This document shows, one piece after another, positions 1,382-10,765 of a stretch of DNA of 10,765 nt (within the stretch, counting starts at the first letter, position 1; each line of letters starts with the position of its first letter). The DNA comes from Selaginella moellendorffii. Taxonomy: Eukaryota; Plantae; Lycopodiophyta. The DNA is taken from contig NW_003314589.1 of NCBI RefSeq assembly GCF_000143415.4, forward strand, positions 1 to 10,765, in the 5' to 3' direction. The position numbers and the translations under genes are program-made. A model generated the notes under the pieces. That model saw only the letters and a program-made list of their open reading frames with translations, was not told the origin of the DNA and searched no databases.

Positions 1382-2763
1382 TCAAGAGCACAACATGGAG
1401 AAGAAATGAAGTGTTATATTGCCCAAATAGATTCTATATGATTTTGAAATTGTGTATTTGAATTGTAGAATTTCAAGTCTGCAGCAAATGGATATTGCTA
1501 GTTCACACAACAGTGAAGGCAAGATCCAGAACAACATTATTGTATCGCCCACTAAACCAGTTAGGAAGCGATAGTGGTGGATAGTGTGGTAGTACCAGCT
1601 GCTGTCTTCCAAGTCATAAACCATCTTTGTTGTGCAGCTGATTCATGCAGAAGTAGCATGCACCTGTGGAGATGAAGTGAAGAGAAGAAGAGCGGAAGCT
1701 ACGATGGTGGATGACTCCAAGGATAATCGTATATAATATCATAGATATATATACATGATGAAGAGACATGTCTCTAGCCTACACCTGGATCAGTGAAGTG
1801 GCACTACTGCCACCTAGGATCATGTCATAGAGAGCATATACTCAACACTCCCTCTCGATCTCAATGACATCAATCTGAGATCACTCTCCCTCTGCATCCA
1901 AGCACTCTGTCGTATTCACGACAGAAATCTGTCTTTGCTCAGTGCCTCCTCTCAGCGCCTCTGCCAGCACCTTCTCACACCAGCGCTTCACTCAGCGCTC
2001 CAGTGGAGTCTCTGCTCGGCCAGCCCTCGGGGCCTCGTGCCACCACTCGGCTGATGGACACCATGGCAGTACATTGAATGTGAATCAAGCTTCTACCACT
2101 CTGATCCCGGTCCTCGTCCCAAACCAAGAGTTTGATTATGTCATCTTTATAATCCTATACAACCTGCCCTTGTACCAGTGGAAGCAAACCAACATCTGGA
2201 GTACTGTTGGAATTGGAATGGCTTTGCACAAATTGAGCCTTACATTGTATCTTTTCTGCATCATATACATCTTTCCAAGCTCTGAAATCCTGACAAGCTG
2301 GGGGTCATGGTCCTTGTTAGGAAGTGGTTGCCATGAATTTGTGAGGGAGAAGTAGACCTTGCACTTGCAAACCACATAGAGACGTCGCAAGGACTACAAG
2401 CAAGGACGTGATCCTCTTCACCTCAAGTATATAATAAAGAAAAAATTAGGTTCATACTTTTAGTTACCACGAAAGCATGACAAACCCATCTTTAGCTGTG
2501 TGGCACGCTAAAGCAAGAGTTAAGACCCAACTATTCTGGGCACTTAGATATGTGTATGCACGAACATCTTTATAGGAGACTGTTTTCAACTTGAAGGATG
2601 AGAACAACCCCTATACTGTGAACCAGAAAAAAATCTCTTTCTTTGTTCACAACCTTGTGACCTTTTCCTTGAGACCACCATGCCCGTCCCATTGTCCTAT
2701 GACCACCACCATATACTCTAGACCATCATATCCATGAGTTGCAAGGCCATGTGAAGGATATTT
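1382..2763 (-). pseudogene. Possible degenerate F-box/kelch-like (beta-propeller) gene remnant
   Basis: Collinear minus-strand peptides resemble kelch/F-box-associated blades: HGLATHGYDGLEYMVVVIGQWDG (~2752-2684), CKVYFSLTNSWQPLP, WYKGRLY, IIKLLVWDED (shifted frame), ECLDAEGE*SQIDVI, MVYDLEDSSW. There are plausible acceptors (cttgtag at 2400-2394, ctccacag near 1664) and several stops or frameshifts. No F-box motif was seen. Confidence 0.4.
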
Positions 2764-2899
2764 CTTTGCTCATCACCTGGTGAATAACAACAGCTACATA
2801 GCCTTTAGAGCTAATCCTTTACAAACAAATTGGTTAGACTTTTGAAAGAAAATTGAAACTTTAGCTTTATAACCATCTTGTGTTATTTAAGGCTATAAG

Positions 2900-4498
2900 T
2901 CATTTTTAGACTGTGCTTTCATAACACATTTTTTTTAATTATTGAATTTTTTTTTAGGATTCAAACGTACTAGATTACCTAACAAATACTCAAAGCTCTC
3001 AAAGCATAGGCAAACTTATTATTGAGCATTTAGCTGACAGCTATTTGATACAAAATTAAAAGAAGAGCATAATTATTTCATTGGTTATATGATTGACTTA
3101 GTTGTAAATTGATTTTTCTTTACTTTAAAGAAAAAGGACTTTTAGGATTGTGGTAGTAATGAAAGTATATTTCTCTTGTATTTATTAGTTATGATAAAAG
3201 TGAGAGACTAATAAGGACAAAAAAGCTTTTAGTTTCCCTACACATACACCACTTTAACTATTGAATTAACTTTTGATCCTGTTTAGTATATAAGTAATTT
3301 CTGTACCTCTTGTAGAATTTCTGCTATGTTGAATTATAACTTTATAAATTAATACAGAAAAGCTGATATAGTTGGACTTCTTTGGCAAATAGCCCTAGTA
3401 TATAGTTCGCCCATATATATATGTATGTATGTATGTATGTATATATGTATATATATATATATATAATAGTACTGTTTAGTATATAATATATAGTCTTTTA
3501 ACTAAAAAGGAAGAAAAATATACTCTAACTTTATAATGTCTATATTTGATGGTCACATAACTCAATTTTATTTTGCATTTGAATACCTTAAAAAGCCCAT
3601 ATAAATGAATTTCATCATAGTTTTATTCTAGAACCTGATAGATATAGTAATCTTGAAAATTACAATAAATCACATATTCTCAAGGTCATTAGTGTATATG
3701 TAAAATTCATAACTCTAATGAATTATTAAATTTATTTCTTTAATAAATTTAAAATATTTAATTAAAATTTTAAGGTATTATTATTATATATTTTACAAAA
3801 ATAAAAAATAACCTAATATATATAATCTATATAAGCTGGAAAGTTAAATGACCTCTTTAAAATATCAATAGTAGGAACTTAATAAATAAAAAATATTTTG
3901 TGTAAAATAAATTTTATAATTTTTAATAAATAGGTAAGAATTGCTGATGCAACCAGTTTAAACAACTAAAAACCTCTAAAACAATGATGATAATCATAAA
4001 GTGGTTAGTGCACTAAGTTAAAGTATTGCAACTAATAAAAAAACTAGGTCAGAGTATCATAATCTATTGAGATATACTAGAGGTAGTAAATTGTAATAAA
4101 TTTAAATAAATAATATGTATTAATACTAAAAAAATCACTTATATTTAAGAAAAATAATAAAATGATTAGAATGATATTTTAGAAAAATATTTAATTTTTT
4201 TTATATGGGTGGTAGGATAAACCTAGAATATGGTTGGATATTCTGGGATATTTTACCATTTAACAGTTAATATTTATTTAAATTAATCTTTTACTTATAA
4301 ACATATTTATAATTTATAAACACTTCCTAGTATATTCTACTTCATTCTACCATTGAAAGTTGTAATAAAATTAGAATTAAATTTATGTAAGTAACTATCC
4401 TAATTAATAGTGTTTAAAATATAAATAAGGTAATTATTGATTATATTATCATTAAAAATTAATAAATAAACAAGCAAGTTGCTTGTATGTAAATCTAC
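2900..4498. other. Very AT-rich, CpG-depleted non-coding tract, probably decayed transposon DNA
   Basis: No ORF in the track. I noticed only about two CpGs (near 2966 and 3408). There is an abrupt compositional boundary at ~4500. Confidence 0.6.
3413..3465. repeat. Compound (AT)n/(GTAT)n microsatellite
   Basis: atatatatatgtatgtatgtatgtatgtatatatgtatatatatatatatata. Confidence 0.95.
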
Positions 4499-4501
4499 TT
4501 G

Positions 4502-4797
4502 TACCTGAATAGCTTAAGGTACACAAGCTTTCATTCATTTTTGGTTTGAAAGTTCTAGAGTTTTTGTAACTTTCCTACAGCAAGCTATAATACAAGCTCC
4601 AAATAAGAAACTTTTACTTGAGGATTTTTTACATCCGGATCTGGTCTGCATCATGGAAAGCCATCAATTTACTCTGGAACTTCCCTCACACCTGTGCTGC
4701 TCAAATCCAGGCATCCGAGTTGGAGCCATCAAGTCGGCTCTTGGTACCAAAGACTATTCAACACTAGCTCTGGCGAGTTATGGACATTGGCACGCTT
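4502..4797 (+). pseudogene. Inverted, deletion-riddled subtilase fragment (end of exon 8 to start of exon 11)
   Basis: Collinear with the reverse complement of ~6476-5952. 4517-4549 aggtacacaagctttcattcatttttggtttga matches the start of intron 8 with 1 mismatch. 4672-4753 contains ctctggaacttc|cctcacacctgtgctgc|tcaaatccaggcatccgagttgg|agccatcaagtcggctct|ggtaccaaaga, which match exon 10 blocks and the intron 10 donor. Confidence 0.9.
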
Positions 4798-4799
4798 AA

Positions 4800-5120
4800 G
4801 TAAGCTTACTTCCATGTTAAAATCTCTATGTTTCATCTACACAAACCTCTAGGTGTTTGGCCCGCATCCAAGAGCATAACGAGCGGACAAAGGAAGAATC
4901 AAGTAGCAAATTAGTGACGGCTCCATCATAGTGAAAAGCCATTGAAGCAAAGGATTCTTTGCCCAAGGTGGGGATGAAGAGGACTAACTTAGTATATAAG
5001 ATCAGGCGTTGGCATAGAGTTCTCGTCTCTCTCATTGAGTTACAGATCAACCCCAAGCACAAGCCATCGAACAGTGCTGGGATCGTATGTTTTGTTGCTA
5101 CAATTTGACAGGAAATTCTC
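4800..5120 (+). pseudogene. Second inverted subtilase fragment (intron 4 to exon 6), heavily deleted
   Basis: aagcttacttcc..gttaa (intron 4), aggtgtttggcccgcatccaagagc (GVWPESKS exon start), ttagtgacgg..ccat..gcaaaggattctttg (weak match to DDGDSI..QKGIF), caagccatcga (QTIE) and gacaggaaattctc (DRKFS, 13/14). These occur in the same order as gene positions 7598 to 6943. Confidence 0.75.
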
Positions 5121-5121
5121 A

Positions 5122-5388
5122 AGCACAGTGTTGTACCGTGGACTAGAAATGCTCAGAGCAAACCCCAGTGCAGTGAATTTGATCAATCGAAAGCTCTTTT
5201 ATTCAACACCTCGATAAGATCCACTTTGAGACCAGGGGGAATTAAACGAATGTTTTGTAGAAAGTTTGGGTACTGCATTATTATGCCGAAAGAGGGCATC
5301 TTGGAAATGAAAGGGATTGAAGCTTGACGCACTGTTTTGCCGCCAAATCTTGTGACCTGGAGCATTCTTATCATGTCGACTGCCATCT
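5122..5388 (+). pseudogene. Third, highly decayed and internally deleted PPR fragment of the same family as the flanking copies
   Basis: 5122-5186 agcacagtgttgtaccgtggactagaaatgctcagagcaaaccccagtgcagtgaatttgatcaa aligns to 326-390. tatgccgaaagagggcat aligns to ~550-567. gccaaatcttgtgacctggagcattcttatcatgtcg aligns to ~699-735. ctgccatct weakly matches ~843-851. Confidence 0.85.
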
Positions 5389-5395
5389 CTTCAAC

Positions 5396-8196
<2,801 letters not shown>

Positions 8197-8486
8197 CGCT
8201 CCAGGGAAATCTTCTCCCCATGCGGCTCCATTTTAAAGGCTAAAGCGCGGGCGGAAGCTCCAACCACGGGCAAAGGCCACTCCGCCAGCCGATCAATAAG
8301 TCTCGTCCATTTCTATCGGATCACGCATCATATCACCAAAATCCAAAGAAAGAACCTCGCACGCATCATTCCCGCCAAATGCAGGCAACTTAAAACACTA
8401 AACCCCAGCTAGGGCTTTGTTTTACCGCATTAAAACAAAGACTAGACTTACAAGGAGTGTTAAATCACTCGCTCTCTCTCTCGTGT

Positions 8487-9033
8487 CTAGCTAGCTTCTA
8501 TGACGCCTTTGCTGTGAAGGGGCCGCAACGCTAGCCTTCTTATAATGCAACGTTTTTTGATGAGCAGCTTGATTAGGATGTACCCACTGTCCATAAGAAG
8601 AATTAGCAGCTGCGGTTCCACCACCACCACCACCACCACCACCACCGCCACTACCAGCGACACTACTAGCAGAAGGCGGTGGCGGAGGCCCTGGCGGTAG
8701 AGGTGGCCGCAAGACTGGAAATCCTCCGCCTGGATTCGACGAGCTATCCTCGACGATGGCTTACAAGAGCAGGGATTAAGCTTCTTTGCGAGTGGAAGCC
8801 GAGTCTCTCTAGCAGTGAAAGCGGATCTTGTGATTGATCCACGAAAATCCAGCAAAGAGAAAAGGTCGAGAACTTACACGATGGCAAATGGTGGAGAGAA
8901 ATCCCAGTGGAAGCCAACGCCTCCTGTGTGCTGCATGAAAGCTGCCATGTATCGCCATCGATCGAGGAGACTGGACCCTTGAATCCTCTGGTTCACCCAG
9001 CGATGCCCACATTCCATCCCATCCACTGTCATC
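8487..9033 (-). other. Possible small orphan gene or gene fragment (Pro/Gly-rich)
   Basis: GC-rich, with a low-complexity frame RPPLPPGPPPPPSASSVAGSGGGGGGGGGGG. Strong GTAAGT donor at 8877 and candidate acceptor tgctAG at 8809. No recognisable domain. Confidence 0.3.
8618..8646. repeat. (CCA)9 trinucleotide microsatellite
   Basis: ccaccaccaccaccaccaccaccaccacc; encodes poly-Gly or poly-Val on the minus strand. Confidence 0.95.
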
Positions 9034-9131: not shown

Positions 9132-10756
9132 ATGGTTGCCAAGAACATCTTTCGCCGGGATGATCACTTGGAATCATACGCTTGTCTCGTCAGGTGCTGT
9201 GGTAACGCGAAAGATCTGAGCGATGCTCGCAAGATCCACGCTTTGATCGAAGGAACCCATTACAAGAACAACGTCTACATTGCGAATCTCCTCGTCCAAA
9301 TGTATGGCAAATGCGGGAGCTCTGGCGATGCACGCAGCGTGTTTGATTCCATTCTCACCGCCAACTCCTTTTCGTGGACAATCCTGCTCCAAGCCCACAT
9401 TCACAACCAGCAGCTCCACGAGGCCAAGCGCGTTTTCGATTCCATGCCCGGGAAGAATGTAGTGACTTGGAATGCGCTTCTTTCGGCAAATGCCAAAATC
9501 GGGCAAATTCATGAAGCGAGGCTTGTTTTCGATCGAATTCCAGAGTGGGACGTTGTTTGCATGAATGCTATTGTCACTGGGTTGGCGAGATCTGGAATGA
9601 TCATCCAGGCTAGAAACCAATTCGAAAACGTGCCTGAGAGAGACTCTGTGTCGTGGAATGTGATTATTTCGGCATATGCTCAAGCTGGAGATTTTCTTGA
9701 AGCAAAGAAGCTGTTTGACAGAATGGAACGAGACCATGATTCTCAAAAGAGACTGAGCAATCCAGTCCTATGGAACTCTATGATCGTTGCGCTCAGTGCG
9801 GAGATCTTGATGGAGCACAAAAGTTCTTTGCGAGGATGGCGCAGAGAGATTGCGTGTCGTGGGCAACACTTATCAACTCTTTTGCGCAGCATGGCTGCAC
9901 TAATCTAGCAAGAGACACATATGAGAGAATGCCACAGCACGATGTTATAGCGTGGACTGGAATGCTCCGAGCAAACTCCCAGTGCGGTGAAATCGATCAA
10001 GTACACAATCTCTTCGATTCAATGCCTCAAAGAAACCTTGTGTCGTGGACAGTTTTCCTAGAAACACTTTGCAATCAAGATAATCTTGCAAAAGCTAGAA
10101 GAGTGTTTGATCTGATGCCCCAGAGAGACAGCGTTCCTTGGAATGTTATGATCACTGCATATGCCCAACGAGGGCATGTAAACGAAGCAAAGTGCTTTTT
10201 TGACAGTGTAGAAGTTCCAAACGTTATCACGTGGAATTGCATGATCGGAGCGTATGGGCAAAATGGACACTTAGACGATGCTTGGGCATTGTTTAGACGC
10301 TGTTTACAGCCAAACATAGTGACCTGGAACGTTCTTATCGTGTCGTTTGCCCAGAATCTACATTGTGCTGAGTCCATTCATCTCTTTGAAGTCTTGAATC
10401 TGGAAGGGTTCAAGCCAGACGAGCTGAGTTTCATGGGCCTTTTGATCGCTTGCTGCCACCTTGGGCTGGTAATTGCTGCTAGAGATACCTTGGCTTCAAT
10501 GGTTTTTGACTACGATATAAGCCCTGAGCGAGATCACTACTGCTGCTTGATCGGTGTTCTTGCAGGAGCTGGGCTCTTGGATGATGCCGAGGATCTCATC
10601 AACACAATGCCATTTGTTCCAGATGTTTCCAACTGGGGATGCTTCGTGAGTGCCTGTAAGATCCACTCTGCTGGAGTGGATAGGAGTGTTGGTGCTGCTT
10701 TCAATGCCATCGCGATGGATCCTAAAAACTCAGCACCATACGACAATTTTTACTGA
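9132..10756 (+). pseudogene. PLS-class PPR gene with E-type C-terminus, copy 2; full length but frameshifted (~542 aa if repaired)
   Basis: ORF 9132-9908 has a typical PLS N-terminus (LVRCCGNAKDLSDARKIH...NVYIANLLVQMYGKCGS) and overlaps ORF 9770-10756. Copy 1 reads gttgcGCATgctcag and copy 2 reads gttgcgctcag at ~9790, a 4-nt deletion. Restoring it gives 1629 nt of open frame. No DYW domain. The frameshift could also be a sequencing error. Confidence 0.88.
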
Positions 10757-10765
10757 TGAGTGGTT

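Follow-up and report, generated by a model that had tools for sequence, protein, structure and literature searches.

The locus considered here raises the question of how an inverted fragment of a subtilase gene came to keep blocks of small-RNA size while pieces of about 10 nt were removed from between them. The window analysed, which comprises 10,765 nt of contig NW_003314589.1 of Selaginella moellendorffii (GCF_000143415.4), is land-plant nuclear DNA and contains an intact subtilase gene together with two genes for PLS-class PPR proteins (Table 1). In a Pfam scan performed exon by exon, the Inhibitor_I9, Peptidase_S8, PA and fn3_6 domains were found in the subtilase gene, the matches to the last three falling on separate exons. 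Exon 10 spans 6020-6230 and encodes the catalytic-Ser motif (Ser codon 6119-6117); its numbering in a preliminary description of the locus is correct, the gene having 11 exons, and the boundary of intron 10 (5959-6019) has been confirmed by a spliced contig of run X18, from which this intron is removed. Because it contains this spliced contig of the subtilase gene, X18 is regarded as an RNA run. The same description had attributed the pattern either to an unusual deletion or template-skipping process or to selection favouring bulged duplexes or blocks of guide length. The reading preferred here, which is held to be probable, is that the remnant is a dead inverted copy of a subtilase fragment, whittled down piecemeal by a neutral deletion process.

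The core of the remnant (window 4672-4753) aligns in inverted orientation to gene positions 6129-6010 as five blocks with 3 mismatches in 81 nt, and five gap-penalty settings all give an identical core. The pattern of blocks and deletions first described has therefore been reproduced in full for this part, including the loss of 10 nt just after the catalytic Ser, and so has the junction microhomology of 0-2 nt: taken in order, the four junctions share 1, 0, 2 and 0 nt, which is the chance level. Nearer the 5' end of the exon, the loss of 33 nt followed by another of about 9 nt that had been read in 4627-4671 proved to depend on the alignment settings, under which it appears either as 33 nt or as 2+13+26+23 nt; this piece carries approximately 7 mismatches in 44 nt, and both the number and the size of its deletions vary with those settings. 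Similarly, the statement that deletions outnumber substitutions holds in the 82-nt core (4 vs 3) and fails for the exon-10 remnant as a whole (approximately 7-8 vs approximately 10). Coding capacity has been lost: the 8-, 10- and 11-nt deletions are frameshifting, nothing is left of the codons that follow the catalytic Ser, and the pieces stand out of gene order. A copy of a shorter paralogue has been rejected as the source, since these three deletion sizes are out of frame and similarity within introns ties the remnant to the lineage of the subtilase gene.

The core is one piece of a decayed mosaic (4502-5388) made of scraps of two adjacent genes, those coding for the subtilase and the PPR protein, and the last PPR remnant abuts the subtilase stop codon. 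The piece that follows the core (4754-4877) is out of gene order and shows deletions of 16 and 3 nt as well as insertions of 2, 12 and 6 nt. Shortening with respect to the parent is also found in other pieces of the mosaic (476 to 263, 161 to 116 and 456 to 293 nt), and one piece has hardly been shortened (151 to 137 nt). Introns have been retained in several places, namely intron 8 (in 4502-4583), part of intron 4 (4802-4820), the start of intron 10 (4744-4753) and part of intron 9; the mosaic was therefore copied as DNA and not from mRNA. An origin of the deletions as micro-introns or at the RNA level has been discarded as well, given that the deleted pieces are devoid of GT..AG ends and the remnant retains introns. 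Capture of gene fragments by a Helitron, which would be expected to bring together pieces of dispersed, unrelated genes in one orientation between a 5'-TC and a 3' hairpin with CTRR, was another candidate, rejected because the fragments come solely from two adjacent genes and in mixed orientation; inspection of the termini by eye revealed a 7-bp hairpin at approximately 4471-4487, at the left edge, with no CTRR after it. The gaps of the other mosaic pieces were also tabulated strictly, a gap being accepted only if it had clean flanks and recurred under three penalty sets. Solely the core deletions and three 1-nt events were retained, and the 7-21-nt deletions that seem to be present in the PPR scraps are therefore only suggestive.

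Table 1. Coordinates of the genes, mosaic pieces, core blocks and deletions in the window, and of the further copies of the remnant in assembly GCA_000143415.2 (copies a to d).
Feature	Position	Matching gene positions	Strand	Remarks
Intact 11-exon subtilase gene	5396..8230		-	ATG ~8230, stop 5396; introns 46-63 nt
Parent sequence: subtilase exon 10 and first 10 nt of intron 10	6010..6230		-	Pfam Peptidase_S8, spliced contig
PLS-class PPR genes	1-1146 and 9132-10756		+	
End of exon 8, whole intron 8 (63 nt), start of exon 9	4502..4583	6475-6393	+	81% identity, one 1-nt gap
Rest of exon 9 and intron 9	4584..4626		+	heavily eroded, ~155 to 43 nt; alignment ambiguous
End of intron 9 and 5' half of exon 10	4627..4671	6237-6130	+	~108 to 45 nt
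Core, sense-oriented: 3' half of exon 10 and first 10 nt of intron 10	4672..4753		+	five blocks, four deletions
Block 1	4672-4683	6129-6118	gene minus strand	12 nt, 0 mismatches
Deletion 1		6117-6108	gene minus strand	10 nt; Met-Ala-Cys codons directly after catalytic Ser
Block 2	4684-4700	6107-6091	gene minus strand	17 nt, 2 mismatches
Deletion 2		between 6091 and 6079	gene minus strand	11 nt
Block 3	4701-4723	6079-6057	gene minus strand	23 nt, 1 mismatch
Deletion 3		between 6057 and 6048	gene minus strand	8 nt
Block 4	4724-4741	6048-6031	gene minus strand	18 nt, exact
Deletion 4		between 6031 and 6020	gene minus strand	9-10 nt
Block 5	4743-4753	6020-6010	gene minus strand	11 nt, 0 mismatches; last exon base and 10 intron bases
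End of exon 4, intron 4, start of exon 5	4754..4877	7668-7542	+	~75% identity
Inverted PLS-class PPR remnant	4880..4992	10577-10420, 906-873	-	158 to 113 nt
Direct PPR remnant	5100..5388	9915-10359	+	445 to 289 nt, ~78% identity
Copy a	L001 5460-6378
Copy b	L001 18861-19773
Copy c	L002 4921-5747
Copy d	L002 14247-14409 and 15959-16679

The PPR open reading frame at 9770-10756 is 98, 84 and 82% identical to S. moellendorffii proteins, and two of the matched proteins map to loci of the assembly GCA_000143415.2, referred to here as L001 (GL377646.1) and L002 (GL377608.1). Both loci are tandem arrays of a unit with the order PPR(+) ... subtilase(-), 93-98% identical to the window, and their annotated subtilase homologues have 752-819 aa. 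The window itself lies within a tandem array whose unit, of about 10 kb, consists of a PLS-PPR gene (+), an AT-rich spacer, the mosaic and the subtilase gene (-); its PPR stretches 70-1155 and 9683-10765 are 97% identical, and at least five copies of the unit, with 88-98% identity, are found on two scaffolds of GCA_000143415.2.

The four core deletions are common to all five copies of the remnant (the window and copies a, b, c and d), and therefore they are older than the amplification of the unit. Since that amplification the copies have diverged by 2-12%, and deletions of the same type have continued to appear in individual copies. For example, copy-specific indels of 6, 7, 12 and 21 nt are present in the mosaic of copy d, and others of 6 and 93 nt in that of copy c, while an 8-nt indel is shared by copies a and b and a 23-nt one by copy b and the window. 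Substitutions inside the core blocks also differ between copies. Moreover, copy d is split at window positions 4661-4665 by a TG..CA insertion of 1546 nt (L002 14410-15955), probably a solo LTR, whose target duplication, (G/A)CCAT, measures about 5 nt. Taken together, the copy-specific substitutions in the blocks, the separate deletions of 6-93 nt and the 1546-nt insertion point to no sequence constraint across the copies.

The background against which the core has to be judged was obtained from 47 cleanly flanked indels in the non-coding DNA of the unit copies, many of which are unpolarised and may be either deletions or insertions. Single-nucleotide events account for 15 of them and 2-nt events for 6; another 3 are of 3-5 nt, 19 are of 6-12 nt (mean 8.5, sd 1.9) and none is of 13-19 nt, and the remaining four measure 21 nt (two events), 64 nt and 93 nt. 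The 6-12-nt events show microhomology of 0-4 nt, mostly 0-1; they are not tandem duplications, so that footprints of transposon target-site duplications have been rejected as their source. The core deletions (8, 9, 10 and 11 nt, with 0-2 nt of microhomology) fit this class in size and in junctions, and such agreement with the local background, which the preliminary description had itself named as grounds for refutation, speaks against anything special at this spot. The unusual deletion process that had been put forward thus survives in a weaker form, in that the 6-12-nt class is real and still active in neutral DNA; template skipping is not required, as such deletions arise singly in different copies. 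We have found no small-indel spectrum for Selaginella in the published literature.

The number of deletions can be judged on the same background. Recent events give a ratio of 0.09-0.13 deletions of at least 6 nt per substitution, and the per-lineage divergence estimated from the intron-bearing pieces (0.09-0.15) leads to 1.0-2.4 expected deletions in the core (120 nt of parent sequence) against the four observed, with P = 0.02-0.23 uncorrected for the post hoc choice of the region. For the whole exon-10 remnant, about 7 deletions compare with 1.7-4.3 expected (P = 0.002-0.14), an excess somewhat larger than that of the core. The number in the core is therefore mildly unusual, its excess not being clear. 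The quasi-periodic spacing of the deletions has not stood up: the evenness of the block lengths has P = 0.014-0.07 when unconstrained and loses significance (P = 0.07-0.39) once blocks are required to be alignable, that is, of at least 6-10 nt. The spacing looks regular because blocks shorter than about 10 nt go unrecognised, and neighbouring deletions merge when the block between them is too short to be aligned (less than about 6-10 nt). A link with palindromes was considered too, since each deleted piece overlaps a short one, such as GCCGCGGC or TCATGA; it was rejected, as palindromes cover 46-60% of exon 10 and a permutation test of their association with the deletions gave P = 0.10-0.47.

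The course of events that best accounts for the remnant would begin with a DNA-level copy of part of the subtilase gene, placed in inverted orientation just downstream of it within the mosaic of subtilase and PPR scraps. A neutral process operating in S. moellendorffii would yield many deletions of about 6-12 nt with junction microhomology at chance, and four of them would have struck a 120-nt stretch of the exon-10 copy prior to amplification of the unit of about 10 kb, every copy of the unit then inheriting all four. The four old deletions would accordingly have arisen separately. As microhomology does not exceed chance, the junctions point to break repair of the end-joining type rather than to slippage between repeats. 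The remnant itself is ordinary junk DNA undergoing ordinary decay in a deletion-prone genome, and what is noteworthy is the narrow size class of the deletions. More tentatively, it is conceivable that S. moellendorffii has a narrow, microhomology-independent class of deletions of around one helical turn (6-12 nt, mode 7-9) arising at about one-tenth of the substitution rate, which together with rarer larger deletions would steadily remove neutral DNA.

Neutral DNA loss of this sort has known counterparts. Petrov and colleagues reportedly described a deletion-biased loss of DNA in dead-on-arrival elements of Drosophila. As in that system, a dead copy shrinks here by many small deletions, frequent in relation to substitutions, and neutral DNA is removed; the difference lies in the spectrum, which at this locus seems to have two peaks, at 1-2 nt and at 6-12 nt, and is empty at 13-19 nt, instead of declining smoothly. 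Another example is the shrinkage of plant genomes by illegitimate recombination, for which Arabidopsis (Devos et al., 2002) and rice (Ma et al., 2004) are given in a passage of PMC4898805. There too, small internal deletions erode neutral repeats and counter genome growth; however, deletions made by illegitimate recombination are typically flanked by short direct repeats, whereas the junctions at this locus mostly share 0-1 nt, which suggests end joining. The way in which Selaginella maintains its anciently small genome is described as unexplained (PMC4898805). The five copies of the 10-kb unit make up a small sample that carries its own control, and in it neutral DNA is lost mainly through deletions of about 6-12 nt whose junctions are not repeat-mediated. 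If the proposed class is real across the species, its restricted size would point to a specific geometry of breakage and repair and it could help to explain the very small genome of the lineage; if it is genome-wide, it would constitute a signature of mutation that can be measured and might be linked with a repair pathway.

The alternative that fares best, unlikely as it is, would have the four deletions, or more, arise together, in a single event, while the fragment was being copied by a polymerase of low processivity that skips along its template. Such an enzyme would copy 12-25 nt and re-prime about 10 nt onward, either in Pol-theta-type templated synthesis or by MMBIR/FoSTeS-type switching, in the course of break repair or replication restart. 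The presence of the four deletions in every copy is compatible with this idea, as are their tight sizes (8-11 nt), the clean blocks between them and the modest excess above the background rate. In addition, the region 4502-5388 is a scrambled, mixed-orientation patchwork of two adjacent genes and thus resembles the products of complex template switching, in which short collinear blocks from nearby DNA are joined in scrambled order and mixed orientation. Template switching primed by microhomology usually shows at least 2 nt at the junctions, however, and here the expected microhomology is absent (0-2 nt, at chance level) and no templated filler is found at the junctions. Deletions matching these in size and junction type appear one at a time in different copies, so that an event of multiple jumps is not required, and the other mosaic pieces are 16-25% diverged, that is, old enough to have acquired their deletions one by one.

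Also pertinent to a single event is the low divergence of the core, with 3 mismatches in 81 nt (3.7%) vs 36 in 172 (approximately 21%) for the intron-bearing pieces (Fisher P = 0.0003). The difference is not significant when the exon-10 remnant in its entirety, with 10 mismatches in 125 nt, is compared with the intron-8 piece (11 in 71; P = 0.15). Part of the closeness of the core is due to its parent, the most highly conserved portion of the enzyme, which barely changes, so that substitutions of the remnant alone are counted, whereas in introns both lineages change; in fact, contigs of paralogues match 6095-6130, showing that the region of the catalytic Ser is alike even among paralogues. The conserved parent explains only part of this closeness, and the residue leaves room, as a minority view, for a single-event origin or for some gene conversion. 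Piecemeal deletion of a dead copy nevertheless remains the preferred reading.

Less probable still is that selection shaped the pattern, a proposal that starts from the capacity of the inverted copy to pair with exon 10 in a read-through transcript. Two variants can be envisaged. In the first, deletions that break up long double-stranded RNA would have been favoured, avoiding silencing of the subtilase family; in the second, the bulged duplex or the guide-sized blocks would act as an antisense or small-RNA regulator. The geometry is suitable, since the copy stands in inverted orientation 0.6-0.9 kb past the stop codon, and if both were co-transcribed, with read-through of 0.9 kb, pairing between the tail and exon 10 would reach -136 kcal/mol, vs -67 kcal/mol for shuffled tails, leaving four bulges of 8-11 nt. 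Exact matches of at least 21 nt have gone, the longest exact complementarity between the remnant and exon 10 being 18 nt. The remnant may also be transcribed, as run X18 has a low-depth contig over 4644-4839; this contig (depth 2.5) carries no strand information and could derive from any unit of the array, the paralogous units confounding its origin. The pairing itself follows from descent alone, and a longest block of no more than 23 nt is ordinary under random placement of the deletions (P = 0.05-0.47). Local folds of 4495-4760 on both strands were no better than shuffles (z = +1.4, +0.3, -0.9 and -1.5), no Rfam family was matched in the window, and the only pairing left would be at long range, with exon 10 at a distance of 1.3 kb. 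Furthermore, the sequence of the blocks differs from copy to copy, the 1.5-kb insertion breaks up one copy, and the PPR scraps, which have no nearby inverted partner, have been eroded likewise. The suggestion that bulged duplexes or blocks of guide length were selected for is accordingly not supported. Some likeness to young MIRNA loci can be recognised: in a model that Allen et al. are said to have advanced in 2004, young MIRNA or hairpin loci come from inverted duplication of their target gene, and here an inverted gene fragment likewise lies close to the gene and is able to pair with it. Unlike such loci, the remnant has no compact foldback and no conserved stretch of about 21 nt, its blocks are variable and one of its copies is disrupted.

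Finally, an assembly or consensus artefact producing false gaps can practically be dismissed, since 4307-4888 is spanned by contigs from three public runs that are free of gaps in the core, and an identical structure recurs in the four copies of the independent assembly GCA_000143415.2, an agreement that disposes of the low-quality or chimeric consensus contemplated in the preliminary description.

Several minor features of the locus deserve mention. In copy a, four substitutions with respect to the window fall within 6 nt (4688-4693), inside the 17-nt block, and one of them restores the base of the parent; this cluster may have arisen by mutation of several nucleotides at once or by conversion over a tiny tract. 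Position 4693 has three states among the contigs of the public runs. A further low-depth contig of X18 (5262-5435), without strand information, contains the stop codon and 134 nt of 3' UTR of the subtilase gene and carries a 6-nt deletion typical of the L002 unit with copy c. A single contig of low depth in run X1 leads from 4751, where the core ends on the right, back to 4253 through 21 other letters; this junction may reflect an alternative arrangement of the array or an artefact of the assembly graph. The spacer (2750-4500) is very AT-rich (19-28% GC), and contig depth over 4200-4433 in X1 is 5-14 times that of the genes, which indicates a repeated element. The unit copies differ in the spacer by large insertions, for instance one of about 5 kb between window positions 3733 and 3729 in the unit of copy b. 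Another difference concerns a 363-nt segment (1678-2040) that is present in the window and in the unit of copy a and absent from those of copies b, c and d. The GC content of 1150-2750 is gene-like (approximately 46-49% in 1500-2500), and the single long open reading frame scanned there (1942-2355) gave no Pfam match.

Within the subtilase gene, the window lacks at position 7101, in exon 6, the 12 nt ATCCGGTGGTAC, an in-frame difference of four codons; this sequence is present in the units of copies a, c and d, and contigs from X1 and X5 contain it too. Other gaps in the gene are an in-frame one of 12 nt at 5471 in the unit of copy d and one of 3 nt at 6296 in that of copy c. Between the start of the subtilase gene and the PPR gene, a trinucleotide repeat (8590-8660) accounts for the long Gly, Val or Thr runs seen in the translations of several open reading frames.
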